Sequence record: MK250029.1 | DNA: 64,000 bases | Direction: 5' to 3' (one strand) | Shown here: positions 533-64,000 of the stretch, piece after piece | Layout of the letters: the number at the start of each line of letters is the position of its first letter | Numbering within the stretch: position 1 is the stretch's first letter | Notes under the pieces: generated by a model | Told to the model about the DNA's origin: nothing | The model's input: the letters and a program-made list of their open reading frames with translations, nothing else | Database searches by the model: none | Translations under genes and position numbers: made by a program

Positions 533-534
533 TA

Positions 535-1968: not shown

Positions 1969-2004
1969 AATTTCTAATTAATAAAATAACTTTTATTATT
2001 TATT

Positions 2005-2889
2005 TTATGCGTATAAACAATTAAAAAATGTTCCATAAGTATTAAAATATAGAATATCATAATTTAATAGTTCAAATATAAAATCAAATCCTGTATTTTG
2101 AATAATATAATTTTGTTTTACATCATAATCAAATGATAATAATATTTTATTACATTCTATATCTGCTTTTAATTTTGTAGTTACTGAACCATTTGTTACA
2201 TCATATATGTAATAATATATCTTTTGATTTGTTTCTTCAATTAAATCATAAGTAGTGTGTGATATTAATGTGCAATATAAATTAGATGTTAATTTTATTA
2301 AATAATTTTCAACTATATCAAATATTCCTTTTAATTCCATTAACTTAGTTGCTAATAATTTTGCACTTGGTTCAAAACGCGCATAATCAGATATTTTCCT
2401 TTTATACTCATTAGAAACTACATAAACACAAAACATTAATGTTAAATCATCATTTCTATATGTTTTTTGATTCGATGTAATATTAAAAAACTCTAATATT
2501 CTATTCTGCTCAGGTTCTTTCCATGCATTAGGATAAAAATAACTTTTATCAGTAGATGTATATAATAACCATCCCTTAATCAAATCAGATATATTTCTAT
2601 CTTTTGTATACTTCTCTATATACTTTTTTGATCTTAATAACGAGAGATTATATGAAACCTCATCATAATCAATACGTTTAATAATAAAAGCATCATATAC
2701 AAGATTTTTAATTTTATCATGGAAATCCGTTGTTATATCTTCATCTGTTAAATCCAACTTATCTAACAGTTCTGACCATAAATTTATATCAATTGGTCTA
2801 TTCGAAAATGAATAATTAATTACATTCTTCAATTCATCTTCAGTTAACGGCGATGTTAACATATATTTTATTTTTTCTGATTGTCGCAT
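2005..2889 (-). CDS. Hypothetical protein
   Basis: 294-aa open frame, no recognisable motif. Confidence 0.7.
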   Translation of the reverse strand: MRQSEKIKYMLTSPLTEDELKNVINYSFSNRPIDINLWSELLDKLDLTDEDITTDFHDKIKNLVYDAFIIKRIDYDEVSYNLSLLRSKKYIEKYTKDRNISDLIKGWLLYTSTDKSYFYPNAWKEPEQNRILEFFNITSNQKTYRNDDLTLMFCVYVVSNEYKRKISDYARFEPSAKLLATKLMELKGIFDIVENYLIKLTSNLYCTLISHTTYDLIEETNQKIYYYIYDVTNGSVTTKLKADIECNKILLSFDYDVKQNYIIQNTGFDFIFELLNYDILYFNTYGTFFNCLYA

Positions 2890-3728
2890 TTTTCTGATAA
2901 TGTTTTCATTAATTTATATTTTTGATTTCCAAAATCAATAAATGTATTTAATCTATTTACATCAAAATCAAAATTTTGTTTAAACAATTTAAAATTTAAT
3001 CCTTGTTCATTCGGTTGTCTAAGTAAATTACATACATATACACTTATCTTATCATATGAAGATAAACCATATGTTTCTACCAATGCTTTCTTATAAACAT
3101 GTAATTGAATTGTATATGTATTCATATCACACTCATCTAACATATATGCAGGTCCTTGTAATTTCTTACCATATCTTGATGATGTTGTTATATCATCTGT
3201 TGTCTTCCAATCTATTATAATATAAGCATCTGTATTCTCATCATAAAATAAACAATCAAAACGTCCATTAATATGACCATCTTTTGGCGTTTTACAATAT
3301 AATGGTAATTCTCGCGCTACATACTTATAATTTGTTTTAGTTAATATAAAATTATAGAAATCATCAAATCCTTTACAGATTGATTTTAATCTATCATCAT
3401 AATCATAACCGTTATCTAACTTCCATAATTCTAATTTTTCTGTTTCTTTATTAAGATTCATACCGGCATAATCATCCAATAAAGAACCATATCTTTTTGA
3501 CTCTGACGATTTTGCGTGCCATTGTTCAAGGATCTGATTTGCAGTCATACCTGCATATTTATAATTAGGATCATTCAAACCTTTCTTTGAACATACTTCT
3601 GCTTGAGCTACATCATCAAACTTTACTTTAATATAATCATTACATAATTTTGAAACAGATACACAACCTTTATATTCTGTCTTTATCTAATTATTAATAT
3701 TTTCAATTAATTCTTTAATATTCTTCAT
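2868..3728 (-). CDS. PD-(D/E)XK family nuclease (Cas4/RecB-like exonuclease)
   Basis: INGRFDCLFYD...YIIIDWKT and YTIQLHVY motifs; start extended to ATG 3728 across one TAG at codon 14. Confidence 0.75.
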
Positions 3729-3849
3729 ATTAATTTTATATATAATTTATCATTAATTTATAGTAAAAATAATATATAAAGTTTATATAAAAATTAAGGG
3801 AAATAACACTTACAAAAATGTTATTTCCCTTAATTTAATCATTATATTA

Positions 3850-4692
3850 TTATTTAAAATGTATTAATGCAATAGATAATAATCTTGTATTTTTTGTAGT
3901 TGATTTAAATGATATATTAGAAAGATCTGCACAATATATATACTTAACATACTCCGAAGTACTTGCATACTATGATGATGTACTATATAATTTTGTACTC
4001 TATATATTAAATAATTTTCCAAGATTCTTACTAAATGTATGTGCAGAAATACCGCCTGTCTATTCTGGATTATGTTGTTTATCACATAAATCTTCTAATA
4101 TTCTTAATATTTCAAATTTAGAAGGTATATACAAATAATAATCATCTGTACTTTCATTTAATAACTTCTACCATATAGTTTGATTTTTACCTACTGATAA
4201 TTCATTTGTATGCTTTGTAAACATATGTTCTGTACCATCCCATCCATTACCATATATATTTTCTGCATGATATGTATTAAATAAATTAGTATTTAAAAAC
4301 GCCCAACTATATTCATTTTTAAGTCCTGACCAATATGGTGATGCCCATAATCCTTTACCTACGCAAATACCTAAAACTTCTCCATACTAATCAGATATAT
4401 CTGTTATAACATCTGATTTCGGATCCCAGTAATTCTATTCATTTTCATTTGTATTCCATATTGTATACATACCTTTATCATTTTTACTCATAATTGCACC
4501 AATTATACAAAAATATTGATATATCTATTTTATCTCATCCCTATTATAAGTCATAGGTTTCTTCTATTCTGTTATAATACCAATAGATGATAATGTATCT
4601 AATACAGTTACTTCTTCCCCTGTATAATAAATTACTGAATTTTTATGAATAACTTTCCCTTCTAAACCATCAAGTTTTTGCAAATATTTCAT
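3850..4692 (-). pseudogene. DUF1566/C-type-lectin-like protein interrupted by one in-frame TAA (4609-4611); alternatively a shorter gene from ATG 4554
   Basis: Same frame from ATG 4692 (MKYLQKLDG...) to TAA 3850, with TAGs and one TAA at codon 28; C-terminus YIPSKFEILRI...YSTSSQY...RLLSIALIHFK resembles the CLec-like domain. Confidence 0.45.
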
Positions 4693-4723
4693 TATAACAT
4701 AATAATTACATTTAATATATTTA

Positions 4724-6391
4724 TTAAATATTCAAATATGTATCTATTACCTATTTGATAACATCTATCTTATTACTCCATATCGGTAAATAATTCNNNN
4801 NNNNNNNNNNNNNNNNNNNAAATTTTAATGGATCAACTACAGTCCATACATTTATAGCTGCTTCATATTGCTTTGATGTTTCTGCATTCTATTTCCAAAT
4901 ATTTAATAACTATATATCATCTTCATTATTTTCGTTAAAAAGATGCTTACCATGCGTCCAATATGCATTTATTTCTATAAATAAATCTAATGAATGTATA
5001 TAGAAATCTACATGAAACGGATAACGTTCATCTACATTTACATTAAACTAAATATCATCTTTATTAAATAATGTCAATAAATATTCATATGTTTGATATT
5101 CTGATTTTGTCATTCCATTATTTTTATTTTTCTATAAACTCTATGTAATTTTATCATATGTTACTTGATAATAGTTTTTAACAGAACCATATTTCTCTAT
5201 ATATGTTTGCTCTTTTTTCTTTAAAACTTTATTCCAATTTTCATTTGCTTCTGGTGTACCTGATAAATATTTTTCATAGTATGAATCTTTCATTTTCTTT
5301 TTTATTTGTTCATTCTACTATGGATATTCACAACCATATCGTTCTATATTTGTTTCTCGTATTTTCTATTTTATTTCGTCAGATTTACCAATATTATCAA
5401 CACCATATTTTTCTAAATTTGTATTTTTAATTTTATTTTTTATCCCATCATTCTATATAGGTGAAGTCACACCATATTTTTCTAAATTTGTATTTTTAAT
5501 TTTATTTTTTATCTCATCATTCTATAATACATATTCAGTACCATATTTTTCTAAACATGTTTGCTTACTTTGTTCTTTTATAATATCTGACTATAAAGCG
5601 AATTTAACACCATATTTTTCTAACATTGTTTCATAACATTTTTCTCGTATTTCTTTATTCTATAATGGTGATGCATAACCAAAATTCTAAATATTTTTTT
5701 CTTTTACATAATTCATTATATCTTTATTCTATAATGCATGTTCAACACCATAATGTTTCATCATAGTATCTTTAGATTTTTGCATTTTTATTTCTTTTAA
5801 TTTATTTGCTTCTTCTGTTCCACTATAATATTTTTCATTAAATGTATCTCTTATTTTATTACGCACTTTATCAGATTTCTATGCACATTCATTTCCATAT
5901 TTTTCTAAATTAGTCTATCGTATTTTCTATTTAACTGATTCTAATTTAAAACAATTATCTACCCCATATTTTTCTATCATATTATTTTTAATCTTGTCTC
6001 TAAATTCCTTTGATTCTAATGTATTCTTTACACCATAACGTTTTAACATTGTTTCTTTGGCTTTATTATTCCAAAATTTATAGCCTTCTGGTGATTTCTA
6101 ACATTTTTTTGAACAATATGTACCATATTTAGAAGTATATGGTATTCTGTTTCCACATATAGGACATTTTGGTATTATTTCTATATGGTGTTCTATACGA
6201 TAAACTATTTCTTTTAATGTTGTATTTTCATCTATATCATTAAATCTATTAATTAAATAATCATATACATTTTTGTTTTCTCTATTTATGTAATTTTTAT
6301 TAAAACGTCTAGATACATATTTTCCATTACATTTAAAAAATTTTAAAATATATTCATCTGTTATATTATTCATATATTTAATTATATTCAT
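4724..6391 (-). CDS. Homing-endonuclease-like protein (Zn finger + EKYG repeats + Vsr/PD-(D/E)XK-like domain), TAG-containing
   Basis: CPICG...YCSKKC, repeated EKYG(V) units, C-terminal YPFHVDFYIHSLDLFIEINAYWTHG; short N-mask near the 3' end. Confidence 0.7.
5401..5526. repeat. 57-bp direct repeat, two copies, 69-bp period (one 23-aa EKYG unit duplicated)
   Basis: caccatatttttctaaatttgtatttttaattttattttttatc(c/t)catcattctata at 5401 and 5470, one mismatch. Confidence 0.9.
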
Positions 6392-49462: not shown

Positions 49463-52400
49463 TTATGCAAGTACTAATAAGATAGGAGTTAATGTAGCTG
49501 ATTTCCATGTTGCATAATAAGTGACTGAACTATTTATAGTAACTGTACTTGTAGAACCATATGTTGCGATACTACTTGTAGACCATCCGTTAAAAATATA
49601 ATTATTGCGTGTAGGTACATAACTTCCTATATTAAATGTTCCTTTTGTATATATAATATATGGATTTGATGTTGTATATTCTTTACCATTTACTGTTAAT
49701 GTACCATTACCATTATTAGGGGTAAGAACAACTTTATAACTTGCTACTGTTAACTATAAATATACATTTGTTGGATTAGTTGTTACTGTTGCAGTTGAAT
49801 TAGATAATAAAGTACCACCAGATGCTGCAGTATACCATGCACCCGTATATCTTATCGTATTATCAACTTTTCTTATAGGATTTGCTAATGGTACAGGAGC
49901 AGTTAGAGAACTATATTTTGTTCCATAAGCTACAGATGAACTTTTTGTTAATGTTACATCATCTGACCAAATAATAACCATTGAATCTGTATTATTCCAA
50001 TTAATTGTACATGTATTAGCTGAACTTGTATATATAGCATAAAAATTAAAAGTTGAGCTTGTTGTAGTTAATGTATATGGAAATGTAACTACATTACCAT
50101 TTGTTGTTAAAGACCAACCTTTAAATTTATAAATCGTTGAGGTAGTTGCTGTTTTTGTTGGACTTGATGAATATGCAGAAATAGATGCTCCATAATTTTT
50201 CTTTTCTGATTTCTATGTAGAACCATCACTGAAAGTACCACCGTTTGAATTCCAATATACAGTTTTTTCTGTAACTGTATACATTGCATTAAATTGTATA
50301 GCAGTTGTACCTAATGTAATACTTACAGGAAATGTTTTATAATATGTACTATTATAATACCAACCAAGAAATGTATTACCTGTTTTACTAGGAGTATTCT
50401 TATAACCTATATCAGATGGCTAACATTTAATCGCTCCAGGATTATGATAATCATATATTGAATTACTTGTTGATGTTCCACCTGATGTTGGTGAAAGTTG
50501 TCCACCATTTGGATCCCAAGAAACTTTTATATAACCAGTAGAAACGGTGCTCCAACGAGCATATAAATTTATATCACCAGTTAATAAAGATCCACTTGTT
50601 ACTGCAGCACCTGTTGTTGTTGTTGAATAGTTACCAAGGAATACATATTTTAAATTACTACCTTCTACCCATGTAGGTGTTTCATCTGGTTTTAATTCTG
50701 TATATGGTGTATCTTTACTAAATTTCTTTGTAATTGATTCATTACCAGTAGTTTTACTCCATTTTGCATATGTATTGTTTTTATGGAATGTAACAGTAAA
50801 TAATGTTGTATTACCTGTTTGTGTTAATGTAGCAGTATCAGGTGAATAATACTAATAGTTTCCTGTAAATGTATATGTTCTATTTTTTGTACTTGACTAA
50901 ATATTTGGTATAACTGGTTTGTTACCTGTAAAAGAAAATTTATTAGATGTTGTTTCTCCTGAATTTTTATATACGCCAGTAAAGGTTGTTGAACTTGTTA
51001 TATCAGTATATTCTGGCTGAGAAACACTTGTTTCTTTTGATGTCCAATCTTCATTATATATTTTTACTAATTTTGATGTTAACGTTGCTGTACCACCAGT
51101 ATAAGTAAAAGATGTTGGATTTACAGAAACCGCTATTGATTCAGTTTTTAATTCTTTATTTTCTACCGTATTTCCCTATCTTGTTAATATAGTAACAGTA
51201 TCTGTTTTTAAAGAATTACCAAGAGAATCTTTAACATCATACTATTTTTCATTATATGTATGTTTAAGATCTTGAAGTTCAACATGAATTTCAGCATAAC
51301 GAGTTTTTTCCTCTGCATATGATGTACCTAAAGATTGAGAAGTAACAGAAGTTGGCCTAAATTTATACATGTTTGCAGTTAAATCATTAAATGTCCATTT
51401 AACCGTTTCTGTTATAGTCTTATTTTCCATTGACGTATAAGTCCATTTATAAGTACCTTCCAATGTACAATCTGTTGCTGTTATAGTTTTACCAGATGCA
51501 GGAAAATGATAACCTGATTTATCAGTTGCATAACTGTATTTTGTTATTACTAAATTAGAATATGTAAATGGTTTTGATGCATCAGGTCCATCTAATTTCT
51601 ATGAAACTGATACTTCATTTGATGTTATACCATCATACGTTGTTTTAAACTTTATTGTTCTTGCTGAAGTAGATGCAGGAATTTTATATGATGTTCCTTT
51701 AGTTGATGAAACACCAGTTATTCCAGTTATTGTATATGTCTAATTAGCATTAACCGCTTCAGGTCCTTGATTCGCATCACTTCCACCACCAGACGTTGAA
51801 CCAGATGTATACTAATAAACAACTTTATTTAATGTATACTTTCTCTATAATGTAAATGTTACTGTTCCTCCTGAACTATATACTGTTGTAGGACTTACAA
51901 ATAATATTACGCTGGTGGTTTTCTTTGATTCTGGTGTCATAACTGACTTTGTATTAGCAGCTTGTTTTACTGTAAAACTAGGATGTGTTAAAGCAACTCC
52001 ATCAATTGTTGTTTGCTTCTGTGTTGTACCACCTGCAGGTATTGTTGTAACATTAGTAACAGGAGATTCTGTAGTTCCTTTTGTTGTTGCACTTACAGTA
52101 GAAAATGTCACATTTTCTGTAACATTTTCAGATTCACCAGTATTATATGTTTTCCTAAAAGTTAATGTACCCGAACTTATATTTCCTCCGCTTGCAGGAA
52201 TTAAATTTGTAGTAATACTTGCATTATCTAATTTAGTTACATACTTATCCCGTTTTGTTTGAGTAATAGTTATATTTGCCTGTTCATACATATCACCACG
52301 TAAACCCATTGCATGAATTATAATAGTTCTATCAGAAGATGCATTATCTCTTTTACTAAATGTAACACTAAATGGATTATTATGTGTATATATTCCATCC

Positions 52401-52729
52401 TAATGTGGTGTATTATTTATTGTACAACCAGATGTATCTCCACTACCACTTTTAAATGTTGCATTAGGATAATTATATATTCGTTCTTCTGTTCTTGTGG
52501 TAAATCCTTCTCTTACTGAATATGTTTCTTTACAATATAAATTAAATTTTTGTGTTGTTCCTCCTTCCCATGATATATTTGGTATAGTACTAGGATCAGA
52601 ACCATATTCTGTTTTAATTAAAGTTTCTGTTTTCTTTACATAGAAACGTCTGGAAGTTTTCTGCCCTTCCCAACACACATGTTGGTTTTTCTATACATCA
52701 ACAGCTTTATTATTATTTTTTATAATCAT
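49463..52729 (-). CDS. Large Thr/Ser-rich tail-fibre/adhesin with InlB B-repeat (Flg_new)-like repeats (about 1088 aa, TAG-containing)
   Basis: Four minus-strand track ORFs (52400, 51845, 51242, 49754) fall in one frame from ATG 52729 to TAA 49463; repeats of W..NGG....P.KTG.TF.GWY type. Confidence 0.75.
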
Positions 52730-52758
52730 GTTTACTAATAAATAATTAATTTTTAGAA

Positions 52759-53790
52759 CTAATCTTTATAAGCATTATATGTTGCAATAACATCTTTTAA
52801 ATGAATAGTAGGGAATTTCTGTAACTTTCTTAATATATTAATAAAATCTTCTTTACTGCTCATATTAATTCTGGATCTATTATAACCATAACGTCCTCTA
52901 TAACCACTAAAAGATTTACTATATACACCATGTCCTAATATAATAGTTAATAATATATCATCATTAAACTGTAATTGTAAATCTTTTATATTTCTGTTCT
53001 TTGCACATATAAATAAAGCTGCTAATCTTGCAACCATTTTATCTGCTTTTGTTATTTTATCAAAACCACTGAAATTCCTTGTATCTATACATTTATTCAT
53101 ACGGTCAATATCTTTCTGAACTACTTTATATACTTTTCCTGTACATGTTAATTCATCTGTAATTCTCTATGTATTAAATACTTTTTCTACCTATTTTAGT
53201 AATGCGTCATATATTTCAGATTGCTATGATTTAATGTCAAACTATGTACTATTATACTTAGTAATAAACTTATTGACAGCAGTATTCATATTATCTGAAA
53301 TATTACATACACTTAATATAATTTCATCTGTAGTATAAGGAAATGAAACACACCATGCACTAAATTCTTTTGGTTTATTCCTATATGTTATTTCATATGG
53401 AATTTGCTTAATATTGAATATGAAATTATCACCGATAACACATTTGAAATATTTTCTAAATATATCTAAACTATAATTTGTTTCTACTGTTATTTTAATT
53501 TGTTCATTATTAAACTAATCACAATCTATAGTATAAGGAAAATATGTTTTCTTAATAGCAGACATTATATCAGTAATTGTATTTAATACATTATTAACAA
53601 GATCGTATTTATTGATGAAATATTCATTTACTTCATCTATATTATCACATTGTGCTAATGATGTAATTTTGACATTATCATTAATCATTTGAGAAACTTC
53701 CTATGTATCAGAATCTGTATCATCAACATATATATCATTGAAATCATCATCAAATAAACTTTCGAGTAATTTCTTTATATTCTTATTCAT
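52759..53790 (-). CDS. Hypothetical protein with ESLFDDD leader (TAG-containing)
   Basis: ATG 53790 MNKNIKKLLESLFDDDFND reads through TAGs into track ORF 52759-53100. Confidence 0.7.
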
Positions 53791-53868
53791 ATAATAATTA
53801 AAATGTATTTTATTATTTATTTTTAGATAATAATTCATGAAATATTTTTTTAATTAAAATATTATATG

Positions 53869-53876
53869 TATCTTTG
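53869..53876 (+). promoter_or_regulatory. Bacteroidetes-type -7 promoter element
   Basis: tttttttaattaaaatattatatgTATCTTTGa. Confidence 0.7.
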
Positions 53877-53906
53877 AGTCACATAATAATTAATGAATAA
53901 TATAAT

Positions 53907-54281
53907 ATGGTATTAAATATAGACGATTTTGAAGTATTGAAATTTTATGGGTATACAAGTCTAATACCTATAAATGCTCGTATTAATGAAGTGTCATCAA
54001 TAGATGATAATCCAAGAGAACAAATACGTTATAAAAAATTAGAATCCTTTTATAATAAGGTAATTGAAAAAGCAAAGGAAAAATGTACAAATAAAAGTTT
54101 TAAGTATTGTCATTTTGAAGATAATAAATGTGTATTTTGTTTATCACATATTAAAACAGGTCATATTATCTATATAGGTAAATATGATTTTGAAATATCG
54201 ATAGGTCTTGATTTCAAACAGATATTTGGTCCATCATATAATTTTTTATTTAATAAAGAATCATATAAGAATGAAGAGTAA
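53907..54281 (+). CDS. Hypothetical protein
   Basis: 124-aa ORF after promoter. Confidence 0.6.
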   Translation: MVLNIDDFEVLKFYGYTSLIPINARINEVSSIDDNPREQIRYKKLESFYNKVIEKAKEKCTNKSFKYCHFEDNKCVFCLSHIKTGHIIYIGKYDFEISIGLDFKQIFGPSYNFLFNKESYKNEE

Positions 54282-54411
54282 AAAATTTTTATCTAATTTA
54301 AATAATATAGAAACTTGCAAGAATTCATTGGTATTTCTTGCTATGGTATTTCTTATTATTTTAACATATGCAGGTATCATATGGTTTTCAGATTATTTGA
54401 ATAATTATTAA
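54271..54411 (+). CDS. Small membrane protein
   Basis: ATG 54271; single TM LVFLAMVFLIILTYAGIIWF. Confidence 0.5.
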   Translation: MKSKKFLSNLNNIETCKNSLVFLAMVFLIILTYAGIIWFSDYLNNY

Positions 54412-54423
54412 AATTAAATACAT

Positions 54424-54756
54424 ATGGTTATACATAAAGCAGAAAAATGTAATATTAATAATGTATCAGAAAATAAAATACATGATAGTACATCAGGTTA
54501 TAATAGTTTAATTATATTTTTTATCATTACTGTAATTACGGCAGTTGTATATGCAATAACAGTTTATCCTGCTGCATGTTCAAGAGAATCTGTAATTACA
54601 AATAAAGATACAGAAACAAAATTTAAAATGATATTGAGAGACAAATATATTGATAATGTATTTCTTGAAAATATTAGTCAAAATTCATGGAATTCAATAG
54701 AAGTATATGATTCAAATATGAAATCTCATAAAATTATTTGGAAAGAAGTAAAATAA
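54424..54756 (+). CDS. Small membrane protein
   Basis: One TM segment LIIFFIITVITAVVYAITVY. Confidence 0.6.
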   Translation: MVIHKAEKCNINNVSENKIHDSTSGYNSLIIFFIITVITAVVYAITVYPAACSRESVITNKDTETKFKMILRDKYIDNVFLENISQNSWNSIEVYDSNMKSHKIIWKEVK

Positions 54757-54809
54757 TAAAGTAAAAAGAAAATATATTTAATAATTACTAATTTTAATAA
54801 AAATAAAAA

Positions 54810-56879
54810 ATGAAGAATTTTATTTTGTGCTTGCTCATTTCATTGGTGAGCGTTTTTAATTCTTATGCAGACACTGTAAATGATACATTGACTGCATTGA
54901 AGTTGAAGGAAGTTACTGTAACTTCTTTGTATCGAAATAATGTACAGACTGGTAGTATGATTAATACATCTACTATTAAGATGATGAATCATGGTCAGGG
55001 TACAGATTATGTACTTTCTACATTGCCTAATATTTATGCATATAATGACAATGGTACGCAAATGGGTTATTGTTATTTCCGTATGCGTGGTATGGGTCAG
55101 GAACGTATGAATGTTACATTGGATGGAATGCCATGGAATGAAGCTGAAGATTTCGGATGTTATTTCAGTAATTCTCCTGATCTTATGTCTAGTTTGCATT
55201 CTATTAAGGTAGAAAAGGGTGCATCAGTAACTAATAACGGTACAGCTGCATATGCAGGTAATGTTTCTTTGGAATCTGTTGATTTGAAGAAAGATACAGA
55301 TTCATGGTTTGATATTGGTTATGGTTCATTTAATTCATCACGTGTAAGTGGTGTTTATAATATGGGTTTGAAGAACCATTGGGGATTGCATGTTCGTGCA
55401 ACATCACAGCAAACTGATGGTTATAAGGAAAATACATATAATAATTCAAAGTCAATTACACTTAAGACTGGTTATTTCTTTAATGATAAGCATTCGCTTG
55501 ATTTCTTGACAATGACAGGTTATCATCGTAATGGTCAAGGTTTTATGGGTCTTACAGAAGATATGATTCCTAAGCATCCTACGCCATTTAAGCAAATGAA
55601 GTCTGGTAATCGTCAGCAGGAAACAGATGATTTCTTGACAACTTATAATAGATTTCAATACAAGGGAATTCTATCAGATAAGGTATTCTTGTCATCATCA
55701 TTGTATTGGCAACATCAGACTGGTAATTATCGTATTGGATGGGATGATCCTTCACGACCTACTGGAAGTGTATTGAATAATTATCATCTTAATTATAATC
55801 TTACAGGATTTAACACAGTAATTAAGTATTATCCAGCTAATAATCTTTCACTTACAACTGGAGTAAATGCATATGTTTATCATAGACGTCATAAGGGATA
55901 TGATATTGCAAACTCTGATAGTATTATTACAGCATGGAAGAATCCAGGACTTACTCCTTATTATGATAATGCAGGAACAAAACCAGATGTAAATGTATTT
56001 GCAAATGTAAAGTATCAACCAATTAATAAGTTTACTATTGATGCTGCACTTCAATATCGTTATACATCACTTCATTATCGTGTAAATACACCAGCTATTG
56101 GTATTAATGGTGATTCTGATTTTAATCATGACTGGAATTTTATGAATTACAGTTTTGGACTTACATATGATATTGATAAGTATTCAAAGGTATATGCACG
56201 TTATGCAGTCACAAACCGTGAGCCTTCCAGAACTGATATGTTCGGAGGTGAATATCGTACAGATGAATCTGAAATGAATACAAAGTCAGAGCGCGTACAT
56301 GATGTTGAACTTGGTTATGAAATTCGTAATAATAAGATTAATTTCAATATTAACGGTTTTTATATGAATTTCAGTAATGAACTTGTTGCAACAGGTGAAC
56401 TTTCATCAATGAATGGTCTTCCTCTCCATAAGCAGCATGATTCATATCGACTTGGTTTGGAACTTGCGATGGATTATAATCCTGTTAATACATTGCATCT
56501 TATTGCAAATGCTTCATGGTCAGAGAATAAGTTGAAGAACATTAATGGAAAGGAAATGAATCATACATTCTCACCATCATCTACATTGTTTGCTGAAGCA
56601 AATTATACAGTTAATAAGATTAAGTTCGGTGTAAATACGAATTTCCGTTCATCTATGTATATGGATATTTATAATAATCATCAGCTTAAGGAAAACCTTA
56701 CACTTAATGCATATGTTAATGCACGAGTATCGAAGATTGTAGAACTTAGTTTGAATCTTAATAATATTACGAATCGTTTGAATTTCTCTAATGGATCAGT
56801 TGATATTCCATCAGATACAGCATATTATTTGGTTGATTCACCATTTAATATGTTTGCAACAGCTAAGTTTCACTTTTAA
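54810..56879 (+). CDS. TonB-dependent outer-membrane receptor (thiamine/vitamin-type TBDT-like)
   Basis: Signal peptide, LKEVTVTS TonB-box-like segment, plug RMRG...RMNVTLDGMPWNEAE..NSPD.MSS..SIKVEKG...NG.AAYAGNV, beta-barrel alternation, C-terminal F. Confidence 0.92.
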   Translation: MKNFILCLLISLVSVFNSYADTVNDTLTALKLKEVTVTSLYRNNVQTGSMINTSTIKMMNHGQGTDYVLSTLPNIYAYNDNGTQMGYCYFRMRGMGQERMNVTLDGMPWNEAEDFGCYFSNSPDLMSSLHSIKVEKGASVTNNGTAAYAGNVSLESVDLKKDTDSWFDIGYGSFNSSRVSGVYNMGLKNHWGLHVRATSQQTDGYKENTYNNSKSITLKTGYFFNDKHSLDFLTMTGYHRNGQGFMGLTEDMIPKHPTPFKQMKSGNRQQETDDFLTTYNRFQYKGILSDKVFLSSSLYWQHQTGNYRIGWDDPSRPTGSVLNNYHLNYNLTGFNTVIKYYPANNLSLTTGVNAYVYHRRHKGYDIANSDSIITAWKNPGLTPYYDNAGTKPDVNVFANVKYQPINKFTIDAALQYRYTSLHYRVNTPAIGINGDSDFNHDWNFMNYSFGLTYDIDKYSKVYARYAVTNREPSRTDMFGGEYRTDESEMNTKSERVHDVELGYEIRNNKINFNINGFYMNFSNELVATGELSSMNGLPLHKQHDSYRLGLELAMDYNPVNTLHLIANASWSENKLKNINGKEMNHTFSPSSTLFAEANYTVNKIKFGVNTNFRSSMYMDIYNNHQLKENLTLNAYVNARVSKIVELSLNLNNITNRLNFSNGSVDIPSDTAYYLVDSPFNMFATAKFHF

Positions 56880-56986
56880 ATAAAAATGGGTGATTAAATA
56901 TTCCTGATATTTAATCACCCATTAATTATTTCATATTTATCAATAATTATAAATTAATTATAAATAAGATAATGAAAATATAAAGA

Positions 56987-58282
56987 ATGATTTATTTAGA
57001 AAAAATGAGTAAATGGAAATTAAATGAAAATAGTATAAACGAATTTTTATGGACATGTGCAGGTGTTAATAAGAATATATTAAGATTATATCCGAGTGAA
57101 TATGCAAAATATGCAGGTAGTGGAGGAACTATTTTATTTACTGCTATGATGGCATTTATATCAGGTAGTTATGCAATGTTTTTTGTATTCAGTAATGCTA
57201 TATTATCACTGATCTTTGGTATATTCTGGGCATTACTTATATTTAACCTTGACAGATTTATTGTTAATTCAATGCATACTGACGGTAAAGACACATTAAG
57301 TTGGAAAAAGATTCAAACTGCAATGCCACGTATAATTATGGCTATATTTTTAGGTATTGTTATTTCAACACCACTTGAAATGAAGATATTTAATGATAGA
57401 ATAGAATCATAGTTACTAAAAGATAATATAGAACGAATAAATTCAGCAAAGAATGAATCATCAGATTATAAGACAATATCATTATTACAAGCAGAATAGA
57501 ACCAATTGACAAAAGATCGAAAACAACTGGTAGATGATTTACAGAAAGCATAGAAAGAACTGAAAGAAGAGGCAGAAGGAAATGCATTATCCGGTATTGC
57601 TGGGCATGGGACTATATATAGAGATAAAGAAACATATGTTAATCAATGTAAACAATCATTATAGGAATGGGATCTTCTTCATAAAGAACGGTTGACAACT
57701 GTATAGAAACGTATTGATGAAGTTAATAAGCATATTGAAAAATTTGAAGGTAAAATAGATGGTTTAAGAGAAGATGGTTTCAGTGCAAGGTATGAAGCTT
57801 TTTCAAATCTTAAAGAAGCAAATAATTCATTAGCGATGGTATCATTCATGATAACAATGTTATTCATTATTATAGAAGTTACACCTACATTTTTTAAACT
57901 TATTATGACATCAGGACCATATGAAGANCATTTATAGATAGAAAATTATAAAATAACAGCATATGTTACTAAAGAGAAAAATGGTCTTGATACAGAATTA
58001 AAAATAGATGATTATAATAATAAAGAAAAATTAAAAGCTGTTATTAAACAAGATGAACCTATTATTGATGTAACAGATGTATCAGTAAAACCTATTGTAT
58101 ATTCAGCTATATAGTCATTAACATTAGAATCAGAACAAGAACCTGAAGAAGTTCCATATATAAAGTCTAATACATCTATTATAACAACACCTNTTGCAAC
58201 AAAGAAATTAGAATTTAAGAAAAATGAGAAAGGACAAATTATGTTAGATTTCTCATCAAGACCTAAAAAATTAAATAAATGA
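56987..58282 (+). CDS. DUF4407-domain membrane protein (431 aa, TAG-containing)
   Basis: KYAGSGGTILFTA, IFNLDRFIV, ISTPLEMKIF, EAEG..SG..GHG..Y, IIEVTPTFFKL after readthrough; ends TGA. Confidence 0.8.
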
Positions 58283-58347
58283 AATAAAAATAATATCCAT
58301 TAAGAAAAAAAACTTAGTGGATATTTTTTTATATAAAGAATTATATG

Positions 58348-58355
58348 TATCTTTG
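58348..58355 (+). promoter_or_regulatory. Bacteroidetes-type -7 promoter element
   Basis: ttttttatataaagaattatatgTATCTTTGt. Confidence 0.7.
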
Positions 58356-58391
58356 TATTGTAATTAAATAACAATTTAAATAATAAAGAAT

Positions 58392-59399
58392 ATGAGTGAA
58401 TTAATGTTTAAGAGTAAGAATGTAACACCACAGTTGAATACTTATGTTATTAAGGTAACAGGTAAGTATAATGATCATCTACCATGGGAAACAAATATTA
58501 TTAATGTAGAGGCAGATCGCATGAATAATTTTGTGTTGTTATTTCTTGCATATGTTGGTAACAGAAATTGGCAGCATAAATGGAAGAATTCTACATTCGG
58601 CGAGAATTTTAAGAAGGGACCACTGCAGACATATCTAGGTGCTTTTACCGAAGATACACATTATCCATGTATGGACCTTATGTGGAATGATGTTGTTTCA
58701 GTAAACATTAATTATGTTAATAATAATGGAACATACATTTTGTGTGAACTTCCTGATGTAGAAGAGTTGTATGATACTGAGGAGGATTTCCTCAAGGAAC
58801 TTAAGTCACAGTTTGATGAATTTAATAAGAATGATCCTCGTGATGTTTATGAGGATGAAGGAATTGAGATTGTTGATTCATATGAGCTTGAGCTTGTAAG
58901 AAATGTTCTTCGTTCTACTGGTAAGTGGGATAATGATGAAATTGATAATCTGTTTTGGGTTGATCGAGAGATTGGTTTTAGTTCATTGGTTGCACGTACT
59001 TCTACAGATGAAAATATTCTTAAAGTATGTAAGCAGGAACATGCTAAGAGTGCAACAGGTGTTGAGTATAATGGATTTAAACCAGAAACACTCGAAAAGA
59101 TTAAGACCGCTATTATTGGAACAAATCTTCCAGAGGAAACTAAGACATTTGTAATTGATATTTGTTCTAAGTATAATTCAAAGAATATGTTGAGTGAATC
59201 TGAGAAGGAAGATCTTAAGAATATCATGGAAACATATAATTTGGTAAATTATTCATATGGATGGATTGGTCCAGATGGTTGGAGCGGTATTTACCTTGAG
59301 CATGTGGTAGATCCAGAGATGATTGATTTCGATGATTATTCAGAGAATTCAGTTATTAAGTATGAGGGTGAAACATATATTATTCATGAAGGAGATTAA
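58392..59399 (+). CDS. Hypothetical acidic protein
   Basis: 335-aa TAG-free ORF. Confidence 0.75.
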   Translation: MSELMFKSKNVTPQLNTYVIKVTGKYNDHLPWETNIINVEADRMNNFVLLFLAYVGNRNWQHKWKNSTFGENFKKGPLQTYLGAFTEDTHYPCMDLMWNDVVSVNINYVNNNGTYILCELPDVEELYDTEEDFLKELKSQFDEFNKNDPRDVYEDEGIEIVDSYELELVRNVLRSTGKWDNDEIDNLFWVDREIGFSSLVARTSTDENILKVCKQEHAKSATGVEYNGFKPETLEKIKTAIIGTNLPEETKTFVIDICSKYNSKNMLSESEKEDLKNIMETYNLVNYSYGWIGPDGWSGIYLEHVVDPEMIDFDDYSENSVIKYEGETYIIHEGD

Positions 59400-59402
59400 T
59401 TT

Positions 59403-59825
59403 ATGTTAATTATTCTATCAATAGTATTAATTATTGTAGGATTATTTCTTGGAATTTTAATAGGTACTTTAGGATCATTTGGTGATTCTGAAATACCTAT
59501 TAAAGAAGATAAAATAATCAAGAGATGTTTGTTATTTAATATAGCATCTCGGTGTGATAAAATTATACTTGTATGTTGTACACCATTCGGATGGTTAGGA
59601 ATTCTTTTATTATTTGTATGTTGTTTTGTATTTCAACATATTATAGGAATTATGTTTATTAGTCCTTTACCTATGATGGAATTTCTTAATACATTTGAAG
59701 ACAAAATATATAGTCTTGCACTATTATATTTAGTACCTATGTTTGGTGGTTATTTTATAGGTTATAATTATATGAATAATTTTATTAAACGAATAGAAAA
59801 AGAAGAACATGAAGAAAGGAACTAA
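59403..59825 (+). CDS. Membrane protein, hypothetical
   Basis: Three hydrophobic segments. Confidence 0.65.
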   Translation: MLIILSIVLIIVGLFLGILIGTLGSFGDSEIPIKEDKIIKRCLLFNIASRCDKIILVCCTPFGWLGILLLFVCCFVFQHIIGIMFISPLPMMEFLNTFEDKIYSLALLYLVPMFGGYFIGYNYMNNFIKRIEKEEHEERN

Positions 59826-60303
59826 ATTTTATGTTATATTAGGTTATAATACAGAAACAGAAACCTGGTATGGATATGTAGAACATTCTTTTTCTATGGG
59901 TGCAGATAAAAATAGGATTAGAACATTTTCTACATGTAGAGCAGATTATCCTTGGAAAGATAGATCATTTCCAGAGAGAAAAAGAATAGCGAAAGCATAT
60001 TTGAAGAAACATGGTTATAGATGTAATTATGCTCGTGATTATATTATAGACGCAAAGATGAATCCTAATTCACCAAATCAATGGATTTATTTTTATTTGC
60101 GAGATATTGCAGACAATCTTAATAAAAAACATTATAATAATTGTCATTGGAAAGTATATAGAGTAAATTCTAAGTTTTGTCCTATTAATGTAAATATGAA
60201 TGAATATTACAAAACATTAGTAAATAAGAAATTTAGGAAGTCTCTTGACAAATTTCAATTAAGAAATCAAGAATTTTCTGTAAAGGAAGTTTCAAAAGAT
60301 TAA
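59809..60303 (+). CDS. Hypothetical protein
   Basis: 164-aa basic ORF. Confidence 0.65.
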   Translation: MKKGTKFYVILGYNTETETWYGYVEHSFSMGADKNRIRTFSTCRADYPWKDRSFPERKRIAKAYLKKHGYRCNYARDYIIDAKMNPNSPNQWIYFYLRDIADNLNKKHYNNCHWKVYRVNSKFCPINVNMNEYYKTLVNKKFRKSLDKFQLRNQEFSVKEVSKD

Positions 60304-60310
60304 AAATATA

Positions 60311-60565
60311 TCGGTATGGCTCTAAAGGAGAGAGCATCATTTATGACTAATGATGACGAAGATTTGTTCGTAAGTTAATCTTTACTAAGAGAATATACAA
60401 TATTTAGTTATATAGAAGTAATTTAATTGTTATAATGCGAAGACAATTTTATATGAAACTATATATGTCATTTATGAGATTATAGTGAAGAATAGCATTT
60501 ACAGTAACTATAATAAGATGATATAAACAATATAACTTCTGTGGTTCGATTCCACACGTACTGAC
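60311..60565 (+). ncRNA. tRNA-like RNA with ~185-nt variable region (nominal anticodon TGA)
   Basis: Acceptor TCGGTATG/CGTACTGA, D arm GCTC-TAAAGGAGA-GAGC, stem TCATT-TATGACT-AATGA, T arm TGTGG-TTCGATT-CCACA. Confidence 0.65.
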
Positions 60566-60583
60566 TAATAAACATATAACATT

Positions 60584-60802
60584 ATGAAAGAAGAAATTAA
60601 ATTCTTAGGTAAAACACCGAGAGAAATTGCAGAACGTTACTTCAATAAATCATATGAAGGTAAAGAACGATATGATATTTTAGTTGAAGGCTTTATTGAG
60701 GGATTTAATTATCTATTTCCTCATTATGATATAGCTAATACTTTGGTTGAAACATTTGAACGAATTAAAGAATTAGAGAATAAAGAGAAAAAAGATTCAT
60801 AA
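60584..60802 (+). CDS. Hypothetical protein
   Basis: 72-aa ORF between ncRNAs. Confidence 0.6.
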   Translation: MKEEIKFLGKTPREIAERYFNKSYEGKERYDILVEGFIEGFNYLFPHYDIANTLVETFERIKELENKEKKDS

Positions 60803-60829
60803 TTATTTTTTTAATTGAAATAAAATATG

Positions 60830-60837
60830 TATCTTTG
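60830..60837 (+). promoter_or_regulatory. Bacteroidetes-type -7 promoter upstream of a noncoding cluster
   Basis: ttttttaattgaaataaaatatgTATCTTTGt; no long ORF follows for over 1 kb. Confidence 0.7.
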
Positions 60838-60849
60838 TATTGTAAATAA

Positions 60850-61165
60850 TGAACACCTATAAGTGTTAAGTAACATAGGTATGGAAACCCTACGGTTCGT
60901 AAGTAGTAATATCGAATAGTCCGCATAATAGGAACATGTCATTATTTTAACATTTATATAAGAATATACTACATGTCTTATATGAGCGTCAGGAGTATTG
61001 TAACAGAGTCGACGTGTTTACATTTTTAGAGGCGCAGCTTTTAAATCTGACTATTCTACGTAAAGTAGTGTTCTATGTAAAGTAGTGAAGTGCAAGATAC
61101 GGCGTCAGTACAAGTCTATATAATAAGTTGCAAATAAAAATAGAAACTGTTAAAATTCGTATCTA
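60850..61165 (+). ncRNA. Putative structured ncRNA, family unknown
   Basis: GC-elevated, no long ORF, several hairpins, tandem 17-mer ttcta(c/t)gtaaagtagtg (61054-61087). Confidence 0.4.
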
Positions 61166-61169
61166 ATTT

Positions 61170-61340
61170 GTCTGTATTTCACAATGGTTAATGAGGTACA
61201 TGAAAAGTGATTTGGAAGAATCATTATAGATATATATGATTAAGATAACGTTCAACTAAGCTATAGAATAATAGTAAGTACAGCGCTGAAAATATATGTT
61301 TATATGTATTGCGGTTGTGGTTCGATTCCACATACAGACA
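61170..61340 (+). ncRNA. tRNA-like RNA with expanded anticodon and variable arms
   Basis: Perfect acceptor GTCTGTA/TACAGAC + A73, D loop with GG (CAATGGTTAA), T arm TGTGG-TTCGATT-CCACA; 171 nt. Confidence 0.65.
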
Positions 61341-61562
61341 CGACTTATTAATGATGAAAAGTCTGCACTTAACAAAATATAAAAAACATTTTAATGTACT
61401 GTTGATTATATGTTTTAATTTTGTTAACTAAGAGATTCTTGTAAATTATAAAAATTTACAAATCGAGGGGAACGCATAACGGCAATTATGTTAGTACTTG
61501 GCGTTTAATGAAATGAATATGTATATTTGCCGATGTGCATATGAGTGACATTAAATGATAAA

Positions 61563-61655
61563 ATTATAATAGTGTAGCGGTTCGCACGCCCGTTGGTAAA
61601 ACGGGAAGGGTTTATGTTTGAAAGCATATTAGGGGTTCGACTCCCGCTTATAAAC
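61563..61655 (+). tRNA. Degenerate class II tRNA, nominal Tyr(GTA)
   Basis: D stem GTGT/GCAC, anticodon stem CCCGT-TGGTAAA-ACGGG, variable hairpin, GGG-TTCGACT-CCC; G33, weak T stem, 6-bp all-AT acceptor. Confidence 0.45.
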
Positions 61656-61942
61656 AATTAAATTACATAATGTTCTCACGAAGAGCGAGCATCGGAAGGT
61701 GAGCAATTTAGAAAGATATTTAAGAGTGATCATATTAAATTGATTTCTAACAGAAATACGGTGACGTAGGAGCTGAAAAAGAACAAACGTATGGTAATGT
61801 TAACATTATGTATTTTTAAAAAATTTTATTTTTTTCCACACAGACTTTGATACATTTTTTGTATCATATATTATATTTAATTTTGAAGTTAAATCAGATG
61901 CTTGTGATAAGTATCTGATTTTTTTAATTCATAAAAAATATG

Positions 61943-61950
61943 TATCTTTG
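61943..61950 (+). promoter_or_regulatory. Bacteroidetes-type -7 promoter upstream of nadR-pnuC
   Basis: tttttaattcataaaaaatatgTATCTTTGt. Confidence 0.7.
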
Positions 61951-61980
61951 TAATATATTAAATAATAATTAAATAATTAA

Positions 61981-63141
61981 ATGATTAAGAATATAGGAAT
62001 TTGTTTTGGTGGTTATTGTCCTATGCATCAGGGACATCTTGACCTTATAATGAAAGCAAAGAAAGAAAATGATATTTGTTATGTGGTTGTTTGTGGTTAT
62101 ACAGATGAACCACGTGGTAATGAATTAGGTCTTAATATTAATAATAGAAAAAGACTTATTAAAGAGTTTTTTAAAAATGATGAACTTATTCGAGTTCTTA
62201 CTGTAAATGATACAGAATTAGGTATTGATGAAAGTATGTCTGAACATAATTGGAAAGTATGGACAGATTATGTAAAATATCAAATTACAGATGATCTTTG
62301 GGGTGGTGGTCCGACATATCCATTTAGTCCAGATGAAAGGATTGAAGCGCATGAATTGAAACTTACATTCTATGTTGGTGAAAAGTTCTATGTTGAATCA
62401 TTGAATAAATTAAATATTAATGCAGTGTTAGTTGGTTACGATGAGAATTCACCATCTAATAGAAGTAATGATATATCAGCAACATATATTAGGCAAAATC
62501 CTCAATATTATTGGGATAAGATTGTATCAACATTTAAACCTGCATTAACAAAGAAAATTCTTGTATTAGGTACAGCATCAGAAGGAAAATCAACACTTGT
62601 TAAAGATATTGGTAATTATTTTAATATACCATATACAACAGAATTCGGTAGAGATTATATGGAGAAACATTGTATGTTAGATCCTGATATTACTGTAAAT
62701 GATTTTGTTGAATTCCTTATTGGACAGAGACAATACTATTTTGATGCTTTGAATGATAAAGGAAATAAGGGTGTTATCATTTCAGATACTGATAATCTCG
62801 TTACACTTATGTATGCAAAAGCATATGTATCTGATAATAATATGCAAATTACTGAAGATGAATATAACAATATATTGAAACCACTTGCAAAATCATTACA
62901 AACAGGTGTTTCATGGGATGTAATTTATCTTATCAAACCGCATAATAAATTTGTTGATGATGGAACACGTTACATGAATCAATCTTCAATAGATGAGAGA
63001 ATGAAGAATTATAAAATTCTTTTATCATTACTTGAAGAGTTCGGTTTACTTGATAAGGTAATTGAATTGAATGGTTCTTATATGGATCATTTTAATTATG
63101 TTAAGGATTATATCACAAAATTATATGATAAAGAAAATTAA
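61981..63141 (+). CDS. nadR: NadR-type NMN adenylyltransferase / nicotinamide riboside kinase
   Basis: FGGYCPMHQGH (HxGH), SATYIR, then P-loop LGTASEGKST, EFGRDY, SDTD, FVDDGTR. Confidence 0.92.
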   Translation: MIKNIGICFGGYCPMHQGHLDLIMKAKKENDICYVVVCGYTDEPRGNELGLNINNRKRLIKEFFKNDELIRVLTVNDTELGIDESMSEHNWKVWTDYVKYQITDDLWGGGPTYPFSPDERIEAHELKLTFYVGEKFYVESLNKLNINAVLVGYDENSPSNRSNDISATYIRQNPQYYWDKIVSTFKPALTKKILVLGTASEGKSTLVKDIGNYFNIPYTTEFGRDYMEKHCMLDPDITVNDFVEFLIGQRQYYFDALNDKGNKGVIISDTDNLVTLMYAKAYVSDNNMQITEDEYNNILKPLAKSLQTGVSWDVIYLIKPHNKFVDDGTRYMNQSSIDERMKNYKILLSLLEEFGLLDKVIELNGSYMDHFNYVKDYITKLYDKEN

Positions 63142-63790
63142 TAATATATTATATTCAGAGTTTATAGAAGGAAGAAATATTAATGAACATTTGTTTATGC
63201 TCATTGGTATTTTCCTTCAATTAATTGCATGGTATATAACTAAAGATTCATTGATTTCTTTAATATCTGGTGTAACTGGTATTATATCTGTTATATTATG
63301 TTCACAAAGAAAGATTTCATTTTATTTCTTCGGCTTTATACAATTAGGAACATATATGTATCTTGCATGGCAGCAAAGATTTTATGGTGAATTAATAGAG
63401 AATGTATTTTATATTATTACTATGTTAATAGGTATTGTAGTATGGTTAAAAAATTACAATACAGAAGAGCAAATAGTAGAATCTAAAAGACTTTCTGATA
63501 GGTTATTCTATATAATATGTAGTATAATGGTGTTTATCTGTGTATTATTTGGTTATTATATGAAATACTTTACAGATAATACACAACCATTTATGGATTC
63601 ATTTTCAACAGTACCTGCATTTATAGCGCAGACATTGTTAATGTTACGATATAGAGAACAATGGATATTCTGGATTATAATTGATGTTGTTTCTATATTC
63701 ATGTGGATGTTTGCTGATAATTGGATAATGGTTATTCAATTTATATTTTGGACAATGAATTGCATATATGGTTATAGAAAATGGAAATAA
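63125..63790 (+). CDS. pnuC: PnuC nicotinamide riboside/vitamin transporter
   Basis: Multi-TM; ISGVTGIISVIL, PFMDSFST..AQ.L...RYREQW.FWIIID; start taken at ATG 63125, overlapping the nadR stop. Confidence 0.92.
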   Translation: MIKKINNILYSEFIEGRNINEHLFMLIGIFLQLIAWYITKDSLISLISGVTGIISVILCSQRKISFYFFGFIQLGTYMYLAWQQRFYGELIENVFYIITMLIGIVVWLKNYNTEEQIVESKRLSDRLFYIICSIMVFICVLFGYYMKYFTDNTQPFMDSFSTVPAFIAQTLLMLRYREQWIFWIIIDVVSIFMWMFADNWIMVIQFIFWTMNCIYGYRKWK

Positions 63791-63805
63791 TAAAAATAAA
63801 ATAAT

Positions 63806-64000
63806 ATGACATTTGTTATTATAGTAATAGTTATTTGCTTAACTGTATATGGTATTATATCATCTAAACATAATGCAGAAGAAAGTAAAGCATTTTGGGG
63901 TGATCATTCAGATTCATCTGATGTTAAGAAATTAAAGTCAAGAATGAAACTTTTGATTGATAGAGTAGATTTACTTGAGGAACGAATTAATAAGTTAGAT
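63806..64000 (+). CDS. Small membrane-anchored protein (runs off window)
   Basis: MTFVIIVIVICLTVYGII followed by coiled coil. Confidence 0.5.
   Translation, partial: MTFVIIVIVICLTVYGIISSKHNAEESKAFWGDHSDSSDVKKLKSRMKLLIDRVDLLEERINKLD

Follow-up and report, generated by a model that had tools for sequence, protein, structure and literature searches.

The window considered in this study, 64,000 nt of record MK250029.1, is the final 64 kb of the genome of the gut megaphage Lak-C1 (Prevotella phage Lak-C1, 540,217 bp) and carries genes for a TonB-dependent outer-membrane transporter (TBDT), a NadR-like enzyme and a PnuC-type permease for nicotinamide riboside (NR). Our analysis suggests, with a probability that we put at about 0.65, that these three proteins form one functional module for the salvage of NAD+ precursors across two membranes. 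What can be observed directly is the integrity of the genes, the conservation of their domains and motifs, their synteny, purifying selection and their presence in RNA libraries, and it is the conserved gene neighborhood that points to a step of uptake across the outer membrane.

Linkage of the TBDT to NAD-salvage genes

A scan of IMG/VR seeded with the Lak TBDT returned 46 unique TBDT loci, with 27-99% identity to the Lak protein. A first-pass annotation of this DNA had allowed that the TBDT and pnuC/nadR might prove not to co-occur. They do: a NadR-like gene lies downstream of the TBDT on the same strand at 41 of the 46 loci (median gap 735 nt, range 3-5,814), PnuC is found at 33, and NadR and PnuC are found together at 31. 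The gene order is TBDT-NadR-PnuC at 16 loci and TBDT-PnuC-NadR at 14. The PnuC profile scan was run with --max, as default filters miss PnuC in the AT-rich Lak loci.

The linkage spans phage lineages whose TBDTs share 27-47% identity. NadR and PnuC follow relatives of the TBDT at 43-47% identity on phage-like contigs of 198-473 kb, and the genes form overlapping operons at loci L008 (all three genes), L058, L045 and L152. The low-identity TBDT group also belongs to phages, since L058 (483 kb) and L045 (362 kb, with terminal repeats) are rated 98-100% complete by CheckV and have overlapping TBDT-PnuC-NadR genes amid those for DNA polymerase B, a methylase, ClpP, DnaJ, a release factor and a CCA-adding enzyme. 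All 15 Lak genomes in GenBank contain the TBDT family, as do LR745206 (635 kb), LR756501/3 (735 kb) and LR756502 (642 kb), the latter group with a contiguous TBDT-PnuC-NadR. LR745206, LR756501 and LR756502 fall with Lak in the Mahaphage clade, for which Bacteroidetes hosts are predicted (Al-Shayeb et al., PMC7162821).

An exhaustive HMMER search, independent of motifs, was used to sample further TBDT contexts. NadR adjoins the TBDT in P0140 and P0164, the former also with PnuC, and in P0176 NadM and Nampt lie within 5 kb of the TBDT; no NAD-salvage gene was found within 8 kb of the TBDT in P0130, and two short contigs were uninformative. When the species genomes of 185,579 prokaryotes were scanned by exact motif matching, which barely covers distant homologues, one relative was found, on a 41.6-kb contig (L009, described below).

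Several individual loci merit description. On a 190-kb phage-like Logan contig (L147, 2623-9962), NadM (NMNAT/Nudix) and Nampt, a pair resembling NARP2, are encoded 3-5 kb away from a member of the TBDT family, without NadR or PnuC, so that a second type of NAD module accompanies these TBDTs. Locus L009/G002 (JAFRDD010000051.1), the 41.6-kb contig, filed under the "Clostridia bacterium" metagenome-assembled genome RGIG2387 from goat ileum, has NadR and PnuC identical to those of the 198-kb phage-like L004, and the TBDTs of the two score equally against that of Lak; a contig of a huge phage was probably mis-binned here into a bacterial genome. A formate/nitrite transporter gene (Form_Nir_trans) is found a few kilobases from the TBDT module in L004 (6675-7268), L007 (8288-8887) and L008 (14399-14971), and downstream of the module in L004, L007 and L058 there is a radical-SAM gene. 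Locus L145 (8001-11551; GCA_020047475.1, JAHZTK010005535.1) encodes an 835-aa TBDT with an extra N-terminal DUF8361 and a NadR-like gene directly after it, on a contig of 22% GC with many glycosyltransferase and methyltransferase genes.

NadR phylogeny and a cellular counterpart

The linkage was also examined in reverse. A search seeded with NadR recovered 64 unique viral loci, 62 with PnuC and 26 with a TBDT. On a maximum-likelihood tree of 82 NadR sequences, the presence of the TBDT takes 2 changes, compared with 24.9 when the labels are shuffled. Two NadR clades are wholly TBDT-positive (22/22, including Lak, and 30/30), with TBDT-less clades between them. No Plug domain was found anywhere in the genomes of five near-complete NadR-PnuC jumbo phages from the TBDT-less clades, and five complete TBDT-positive phages have exactly one TBDT apiece. 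Pairwise distances of TBDT and NadR are correlated with r = 0.90 (Mantel test, 0/2000 permutations as high). The IMG/VR jumbo phages L089-L128 populate the NadR-PnuC clades without a TBDT, with 33 unique tree loci in three groups.

A TBDT-PnuC-NadR-like operon of Bacteroidota type is also present on a 162-kb JGI metagenome contig (L148, 8001-11618), in a cellular context of SusD-like, gamma-glutamyl transpeptidase, dehydrogenase and ordinary metabolic genes. It comprises the same three families as the phage module, in the order of phage clade B and with an overlap of TBDT and PnuC. The representative (P0143) of its TBDT cluster (P0143/P0409) is 32% identical to the Lak TBDT and shares the plug motif NEPEDQG-YFSN-PD, and the NadR-like protein of the operon, at 282 aa, is shorter than that of Lak. 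This operon indicates that the phage module is probably of Bacteroidota origin, and makes L148 a candidate for its cellular source. Our literature search found no publication on a TBDT-PnuC-NadR operon.

The TBDT, NadR and PnuC of Lak-C1

The Lak TBDT passes the Pfam thresholds for Plug (34 bits, cut-off 23.9) and TonB_dep_Rec_b-barrel (72 bits, cut-off 27). It has a predicted signal peptide at residues 1-20 (MKNF...SYA|D), a TonB-box-like LKEVTVTS at residues 31-38, in an alignment column that is conserved across the family, and a C-terminal Phe (...KFHF). An AF2 model (pLDDT 84, pTM 0.83) gives a plug-in-barrel fold of the 22-stranded TBDT type, and Foldseek aligns it to Fiu, PqqU/YncD, FecA and FhuA with TM scores of 0.75-0.83 at an identity of just 12-16%; these generic matches to solved structures give no clue to the substrate.

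The plug bears the family motif in its Lak-clade form, WNEAEDFGCYFSNSPD. In general terms this motif reads N-E-[PA]-E-D-x-G-x-Y-F-S-N-x-P-D; it is common to ~140 representative clusters of a family of ~650-700 aa, and is unlike that of longer, CarboxypepD_reg-bearing bacterial relatives. These more distant relatives measure 730-830 aa, whereas in the Lak TBDT Pfam finds only the plug and barrel and no CarboxypepD_reg, and family scans place no SusD family among its neighbors, so that the features of the SusC/RagA type are missing. Neither TonB_C nor MotA_ExbB is present in the five complete TBDT-bearing huge-phage genomes, and transport would thus require energization by the host.

NadR matches TIGR01526 with 191 bits, under the cut-off of 341, and PRK08099 with 132 bits, under the cut-off of 201. 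The latter alignment begins at model position 64 of 411, which indicates that the phage protein is without the helix-turn-helix (HTH) domain. Lactococcus lactis NadR (6gye) aligns over the full length with 173 bits, and 9x6f gives 63 bits. The motifs HxGH, ISxTxxR, Walker A (GTASEGKST), DTD and DDGxR are invariant in eight phage homologues, and the protein belongs to phrog_3462. PnuC, a member of phrog_1880, scores 151 bits against PF04973 and 137 bits against the NR equivalog model TIGR01528 (cut-off 42), and has the LRYREQW motif in common with 4qtn (93 bits). The start of pnuC overlaps the end of nadR by 17 nt if translation begins at 63125, or by 71 nt if it begins at 63071.

All three genes are under purifying selection, with dN/dS values between Lak-C1 and Lak-B of 0.13 for the TBDT, 0.175 for nadR and ~0.18 for pnuC; a comparison of PnuC with L066 was left out as the profile match extended beyond the ORF. 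In the related genome Lak-A2 (MK250019.1), a LigA-type NAD+-dependent DNA ligase (254891-255442, in an ORF of ~700 aa) and an NAPRTase/Nampt-like enzyme (128997-129884, ~530 aa) are encoded. Both genes also occur in Lak-B1 and in IMG/VR genome G003, distant from the module in each, and no NAD-related genes were seen downstream of pnuC in Lak-A2. The ligase would be a consumer of NAD+, and the Nampt-like enzyme together with NadR would make up a second salvage branch, from nicotinamide.

The region from 54000 to 64000 of the window is 100% identical to 530217-540217 of MK250029.1; Lak-A matches it at 98% identity, and Lak-B at 80% across 64% of its length. TAG is recoded in Lak-C1, where the codon is read as a residue and many ORFs lengthen when it is read through. 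Of the 53 non-overlapping ORFs in the window that reach 100 aa, 15 contain in-frame TAG, which makes up 1.5% of codons. The TBDT, nadR and pnuC are all without TAG, and 1,296 codons would be TAG-free by chance with P ~4e-9 at the rate of the TAG-using class. The first-pass annotation had described an intact TBDT of 689 aa, with nadR-pnuC 5 kb away and all three genes TAG-free. Domains, motifs, sorting signals and a measured gap of 5.1 kb agree with this description, and so does the codon statistic, with the qualification that TAG-free ORFs are the majority class in the window (38/53).

Organization and transcription of the Lak locus

The three core genes are contiguous in the relatives but not in Lak-C1, where 5.1 kb separate the TBDT stop from the nadR start (Table 1). 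Homologues of the five genes in between, and of the two small ORFs before the TBDT, are found in Lak loci only. The intervening genes were considered as additional parts of the module, such as a lipoprotein partner or a periplasmic nucleotidase, and this was rejected because they are Lak-specific and belong to no informative family. The DUF4407 gene (56987-58282) contains seven in-frame TAG codons (and two single masked N) and stands between TAG-free genes, so that the two coding classes are interleaved within 1.5 kb.

Table 1. Features of the TBDT-nadR-pnuC region of Lak-C1 (window coordinates)
Feature	Position	Strand	Remarks
-7 box TATCTTTG	53869-53876	+	Bacteroidetes TAnnTTTG type; ahead of orf124-orf110-TBDT
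orf124	53907-54281	+	124 aa; TAG-free, Lak-specific; no family match
orf110	54424-54756	+	110 aa; TAG-free, Lak-specific; one hydrophobic segment; no family match
TBDT	54810-56879	+	TonB-dependent outer-membrane transporter, 689 aa; Pfam Plug and TonB_dep_Rec_b-barrel
Intrinsic-terminator-like hairpin	56885-56923	+	18-bp stem; directly 3' of TBDT stop
Lak-specific insert	56987-60802	+	DUF4407 membrane protein, orf335, orf140, orf164, orf72
tRNA-Tyr (GTA)	61563-61655	+	93 nt; in 1.2-kb ORF-poor stretch
Terminator-like hairpin	61891-61921	+	Precedes -7 box at 61943-61950
-7 box TATCTTTG	61943-61950	+	Bacteroidetes TAnnTTTG type, exact match; 30 nt before nadR ATG
nadR	61981-63141	+	NadR-like NMN adenylyltransferase/ribosylnicotinamide kinase, 386 aa, no HTH; Pfam CTP_transf_like and AAA_28
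pnuC	63071-63790	+	PnuC nicotinamide-riboside permease; likely start 63125; PF04973, TIGR01528

Host-type promoters had been proposed upstream of these genes. For nadR this holds, with a Bacteroidetes-type -7 box close to its start codon, while the TBDT has no such box directly upstream; the nearest lies before orf124 and orf110. It probably marks the start of a transcription unit orf124-orf110-TBDT, although a promoter role is assigned here from the motif. RNA-library contigs bridge the junction of orf110 and the TBDT (54361-54916 in run X3, 54075-54827 in run X15), and the two small genes are probably co-transcribed with it. Coverage in X3 extends to 56800 and is followed by zero depth over 56801-57600, ending at the terminator-like hairpin, and in these libraries the TBDT contigs appear to be bounded by the gene. 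The TBDT and nadR-pnuC are both present in X3 and X15, which are recorded as metatranscriptomes. Pig-gut metatranscriptome contigs cover 54918-56662, and there are none at 53801-54800 or 56801-57000.

The exact octamer TATCTTTG occurs at ten sites within 27852-61950, at 36243, 53869, 58348, 60830 and 61943 on the plus strand and at 27859, 29062, 30498, 32833 and 33671 on the minus strand. Four TAG-free plus-strand ORFs are preceded by the octamer at a distance of 29-44 nt, and it may be the -7 box of an early or host-type class of Lak promoters. Across the window, the general pattern TAnnTTTG shows no enrichment (111 observed, 114 expected). The 1.2 kb upstream of nadR (60803-61980), in which one of the octamers (60830) is found, have no convincing ORF and match no Rfam family. 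More widely, no Rfam match at E<=1 was obtained across 52000-64000, and thus no riboswitch or other RNA control element upstream of the TBDT or nadR.

Discussion

That the phage installs an outer-membrane importer, an inner-membrane permease and a kinase/adenylyltransferase was already put forward in the first-pass annotation, and this idea gains support from the linkage described above and from NARP3, a pair of phage proteins that restores depleted NAD+. Beyond the genes themselves, we infer the transported substrate, the dependence on TonB, the timing of expression and a role against host defense. In the mechanism that we propose, the TAG-free genes would be expressed soon after infection, transcribed by the RNA polymerase of the host and translated with the standard code. 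The TBDT, given its signal peptide and C-terminal Phe, would be exported by Sec and inserted by Bam into the outer membrane of Prevotella, where host TonB-ExbBD could energize it via the TonB box. It would then import NR, and possibly nicotinamide mononucleotide (NMN) or NAD+, at low external concentration; PnuC would move NR through the inner membrane, and NadR would phosphorylate NR to NMN and adenylylate NMN to NAD+. Such a module may keep NAD+ supplied over a long replication, in phages that also encode a LigA-type ligase and a Nampt-like enzyme, and may refill NAD+ lost to NADase defenses of the host. It would amount to the NARP3 pathway extended by an entry step at the outer membrane, and would suit the Bacteroidota, which depend on TBDTs for scarce vitamins. 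We see even odds for the broader proposal that this TBDT family is the first dedicated to pyridine nucleosides or nucleotides (NR, NMN or NAD+), native to Bacteroidota, long inherited by Mahaphage-type phages, and used by them as the outer-membrane part of a three-component pathway of NAD+ reconstitution, a way round NAD+-depleting immunity.

A number of points weigh against a single salvage module. The 5-kb insert, with its TAG-using gene and strong terminator, indicates that in Lak the TBDT and nadR-pnuC are separate transcription units and not co-transcribed, and the RNA evidence consists of assembled contigs, so that DNA carry-over is possible. The IMG/VR loci were found through motif patterns, which brings an ascertainment bias. 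In about ten loci with the TBDT and NadR, no PnuC is found within 10 kb, and neither gene accompanies the TBDT in at least three loci or contigs (L049, L055 and L146, each with 8-10 kb of flank on either side). Vertical co-inheritance would also produce the correlation of 0.90, which therefore speaks for co-retention and not for function, and the TBDT-less NadR-PnuC clades show that the pair works without the transporter; if the hosts of those jumbo phages are monoderm, this would fit a role of the TBDT at the outer membrane. The ligand is suggested by gene context, while the resemblance of the Lak TBDT to solved ones, in fold as in sequence, is a generic one, and NR (255 Da) could in principle cross porins, so a TBDT is not obviously needed. 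Finally, the phages encode no TonB or ExbB, and function hinges on compatibility with the TonB of the host.

An alternative view is that the TBDT remodels the receptors of the infected cell, by superinfection exclusion, receptor masking or as a decoy for phages or bacteriocins, and that its proximity to nadR-pnuC is incidental. TBDTs are classic receptors of phages and colicins, the Foldseek list includes complexes of FhuA with T5 pb5 and with the exclusion lipoprotein Llp, and the Lak TBDT has a transcription unit of its own. Passages of a recent preprint on outer-membrane proteins (OMPs) of phages, discussed below, favor this role and note that Lak also encodes OmpA and an OmpX-like protein. 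We nevertheless consider it improbable, since it does not account for a strict, ancient, same-strand and often overlapping linkage to NadR and PnuC at 27-47% TBDT identity, for the all-or-none distribution of the TBDT or for the same operon on the bacterial contig L148. Purifying selection has conserved the TBDT as a whole, including its TonB box and apical plug motif, as for a working transporter, and receptor remodelling is compatible with that role rather than exclusive of it. Slightly less probable still is that the TBDT imports another nutrient, such as thiamine (as BT2390 with PnuT), a corrinoid or an iron chelate, with PnuC and NadR as a separate NAD module in a shared accessory region. 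This could be supported by the JGI automatic annotation of TBDT relatives as "iron complex outermembrane receptor", by weak NCBIfam and PDB matches to siderophore receptors, and by the pairing in Bacteroides of a TBDT with a Pnu-family thiamine permease. However, the NCBIfam siderophore matches reach 24-36 bits against cut-offs of 645-925, no Rfam element is found in 52000-64000, and at the loci where the surroundings of the module were inspected, none of the genes was related to thiamine, cobalamin or iron. PnuC passes the NR-specific equivalog model, and the constant partner is an NMN adenylyltransferase/ribosylnicotinamide kinase or, in one phage, NadM with Nampt, again pointing to NAD. The thiamine (BT2390-type) reading raised in the first-pass annotation is not supported, given the lack of a thiamine pyrophosphate (TPP) riboswitch, the NR-type PnuC and the nature of its enzyme partner.

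The salvage module may also be a plain metabolic booster, which provides NAD+ for the ligase and for redox reactions in a long infection and has no part in countering immunity. The NAD+-dependent LigA-type ligase and the Nampt-like enzyme of Lak agree with this, and a 2024 survey describes the synthesis and use of NAD as a general trait of gut jumbo phages (PMC11662467). This possibility, which we hold to be rather unlikely but the least so of the alternatives, concerns purpose and not mechanism and is thus compatible with a two-membrane salvage route; set against it, the NARP3 homologues overcome Sir2-HerA.

NAD+ depletion is among the commonest antiphage strategies, and NARP1-3 are examples of phages rebuilding NAD+. 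If our reading is correct, access to precursors across the outer membrane of Bacteroidota is limiting enough to merit a 2-kb gene, one that has long been retained in the largest known phages. Infected diderm cells would gain high-affinity access to external NAD precursors, and infected Prevotella cells would compete for NR and NMN in the gut. It would also provide a substrate class for an uncharacterized TBDT family of gut and environmental metagenomes, and the forms of vitamin B3 would join the cargos of TonB-dependent transport.

Comparison with known systems

Two bacterial uptake systems share features with the Lak module. Haemophilus influenzae takes up NAD by way of the porin OmpP2, the periplasmic enzymes NadN and e(P4), PnuC and NadR. 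This route resembles that proposed for Lak in crossing two membranes, importing NR through PnuC and converting it to NAD+ by NadR, but it employs a porin and periplasmic nucleotidases, whereas Lak has a TBDT, no nucleotidase gene seen nearby, and its genes on a phage. Thiamine uptake in Bacteroides involves the TBDT OMthi/BT2390, PnuT and thiamine pyrophosphokinase, under a TPP riboswitch. It likewise combines a TBDT and a Pnu-family permease with a kinase that traps the imported B vitamin; the Lak module differs in having neither the TPP riboswitch nor a thiamine kinase, and in its NR-type permease and NadR enzyme. The canonical enterobacterial NadR has an N-terminal HTH, which is absent from the Lak protein. 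As regards the transporter, PqqU/YncD (9c4o, 6v81), the TBDT for PQQ in E. coli, is among the best structural matches (TM 0.78-0.83) and sets a precedent in that its function is the uptake of one small organic cofactor, though an identity of 16% does not permit inference of the substrate.

Passages of a preprint (bioRxiv 10.64898/2026.10.24.761521, Oct 2026) describe the Lak TBDT (cluster HP2985) as 22-stranded and transcribed. They report beta-barrel OMPs in 18% of huge phages and NMN-transport genes near phage OMPs of 10 to 22 strands, and discuss remodelling of the receptor landscape and superinfection exclusion; the conserved TBDT-NadR-PnuC unit, its all-or-none phylogeny and the link to NARP3 are not found in those passages. 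A SusC-like TBDT of the marine megaphage Mar_Mega_1 has been proposed to be an auxiliary metabolic gene for uptake of carbohydrate (PMC9723777). This protein (BFVD A0A8D9FQQ5; 805 aa) is the sole other viral TBDT in BFVD and belongs to a different family, with 13% identity to that of Lak. Outer-membrane transporters had been called unusual phage cargo in the first-pass annotation, which is accurate for isolate phages, with no PHROG family and this one other TBDT in BFVD, but does not extend to huge phages, in view of the 18% figure and the transcription of the Lak TBDT given in the preprint passages. Thus the presence of PnuC and NadR in phages (PHROGs 1880/3462, PMC11662467 and NARP3) and, from those passages, the presence and transcription of the Lak TBDT are already known. 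We did not find it stated in the literature that the NadR-PnuC module of Mahaphage-type phages has this TBDT family as a third member, conserved and clade-defining, nor that the module has a bacterial counterpart operon or implies a TBDT family for NAD precursors.

Among the closest known systems is NARP3 of phage TrudiRoth, in which the PnuC-like Bas30_87 and the NadR-like Bas30_86 restore NAD+ depleted by Sir2-HerA (Sci Adv 2026, PMC13464706). Like NARP3, the Lak module has an adjacent PnuC-type permease and an HTH-less NadR with the NMN adenylyltransferase and ribosylnicotinamide kinase domains, from the same PHROGs (1880 and 3462), and a proposed route from NR through NMN to NAD+. The import of NR, its conversion to NAD+ and the rescue from an NADase have been demonstrated only for Bas30_86/87. 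The Lak NadR is much nearer to the L. lactis enzyme 6gye than to 9x6f, which we take to be the NARP3 enzyme. The hosts also differ, Bacteroidota for Lak and Enterobacteriaceae for NARP3, and the account of NARP3 (PMC13464706) mentions no outer-membrane component, whereas the Lak system has a conserved third gene, the TBDT, located 5 kb from the pair.

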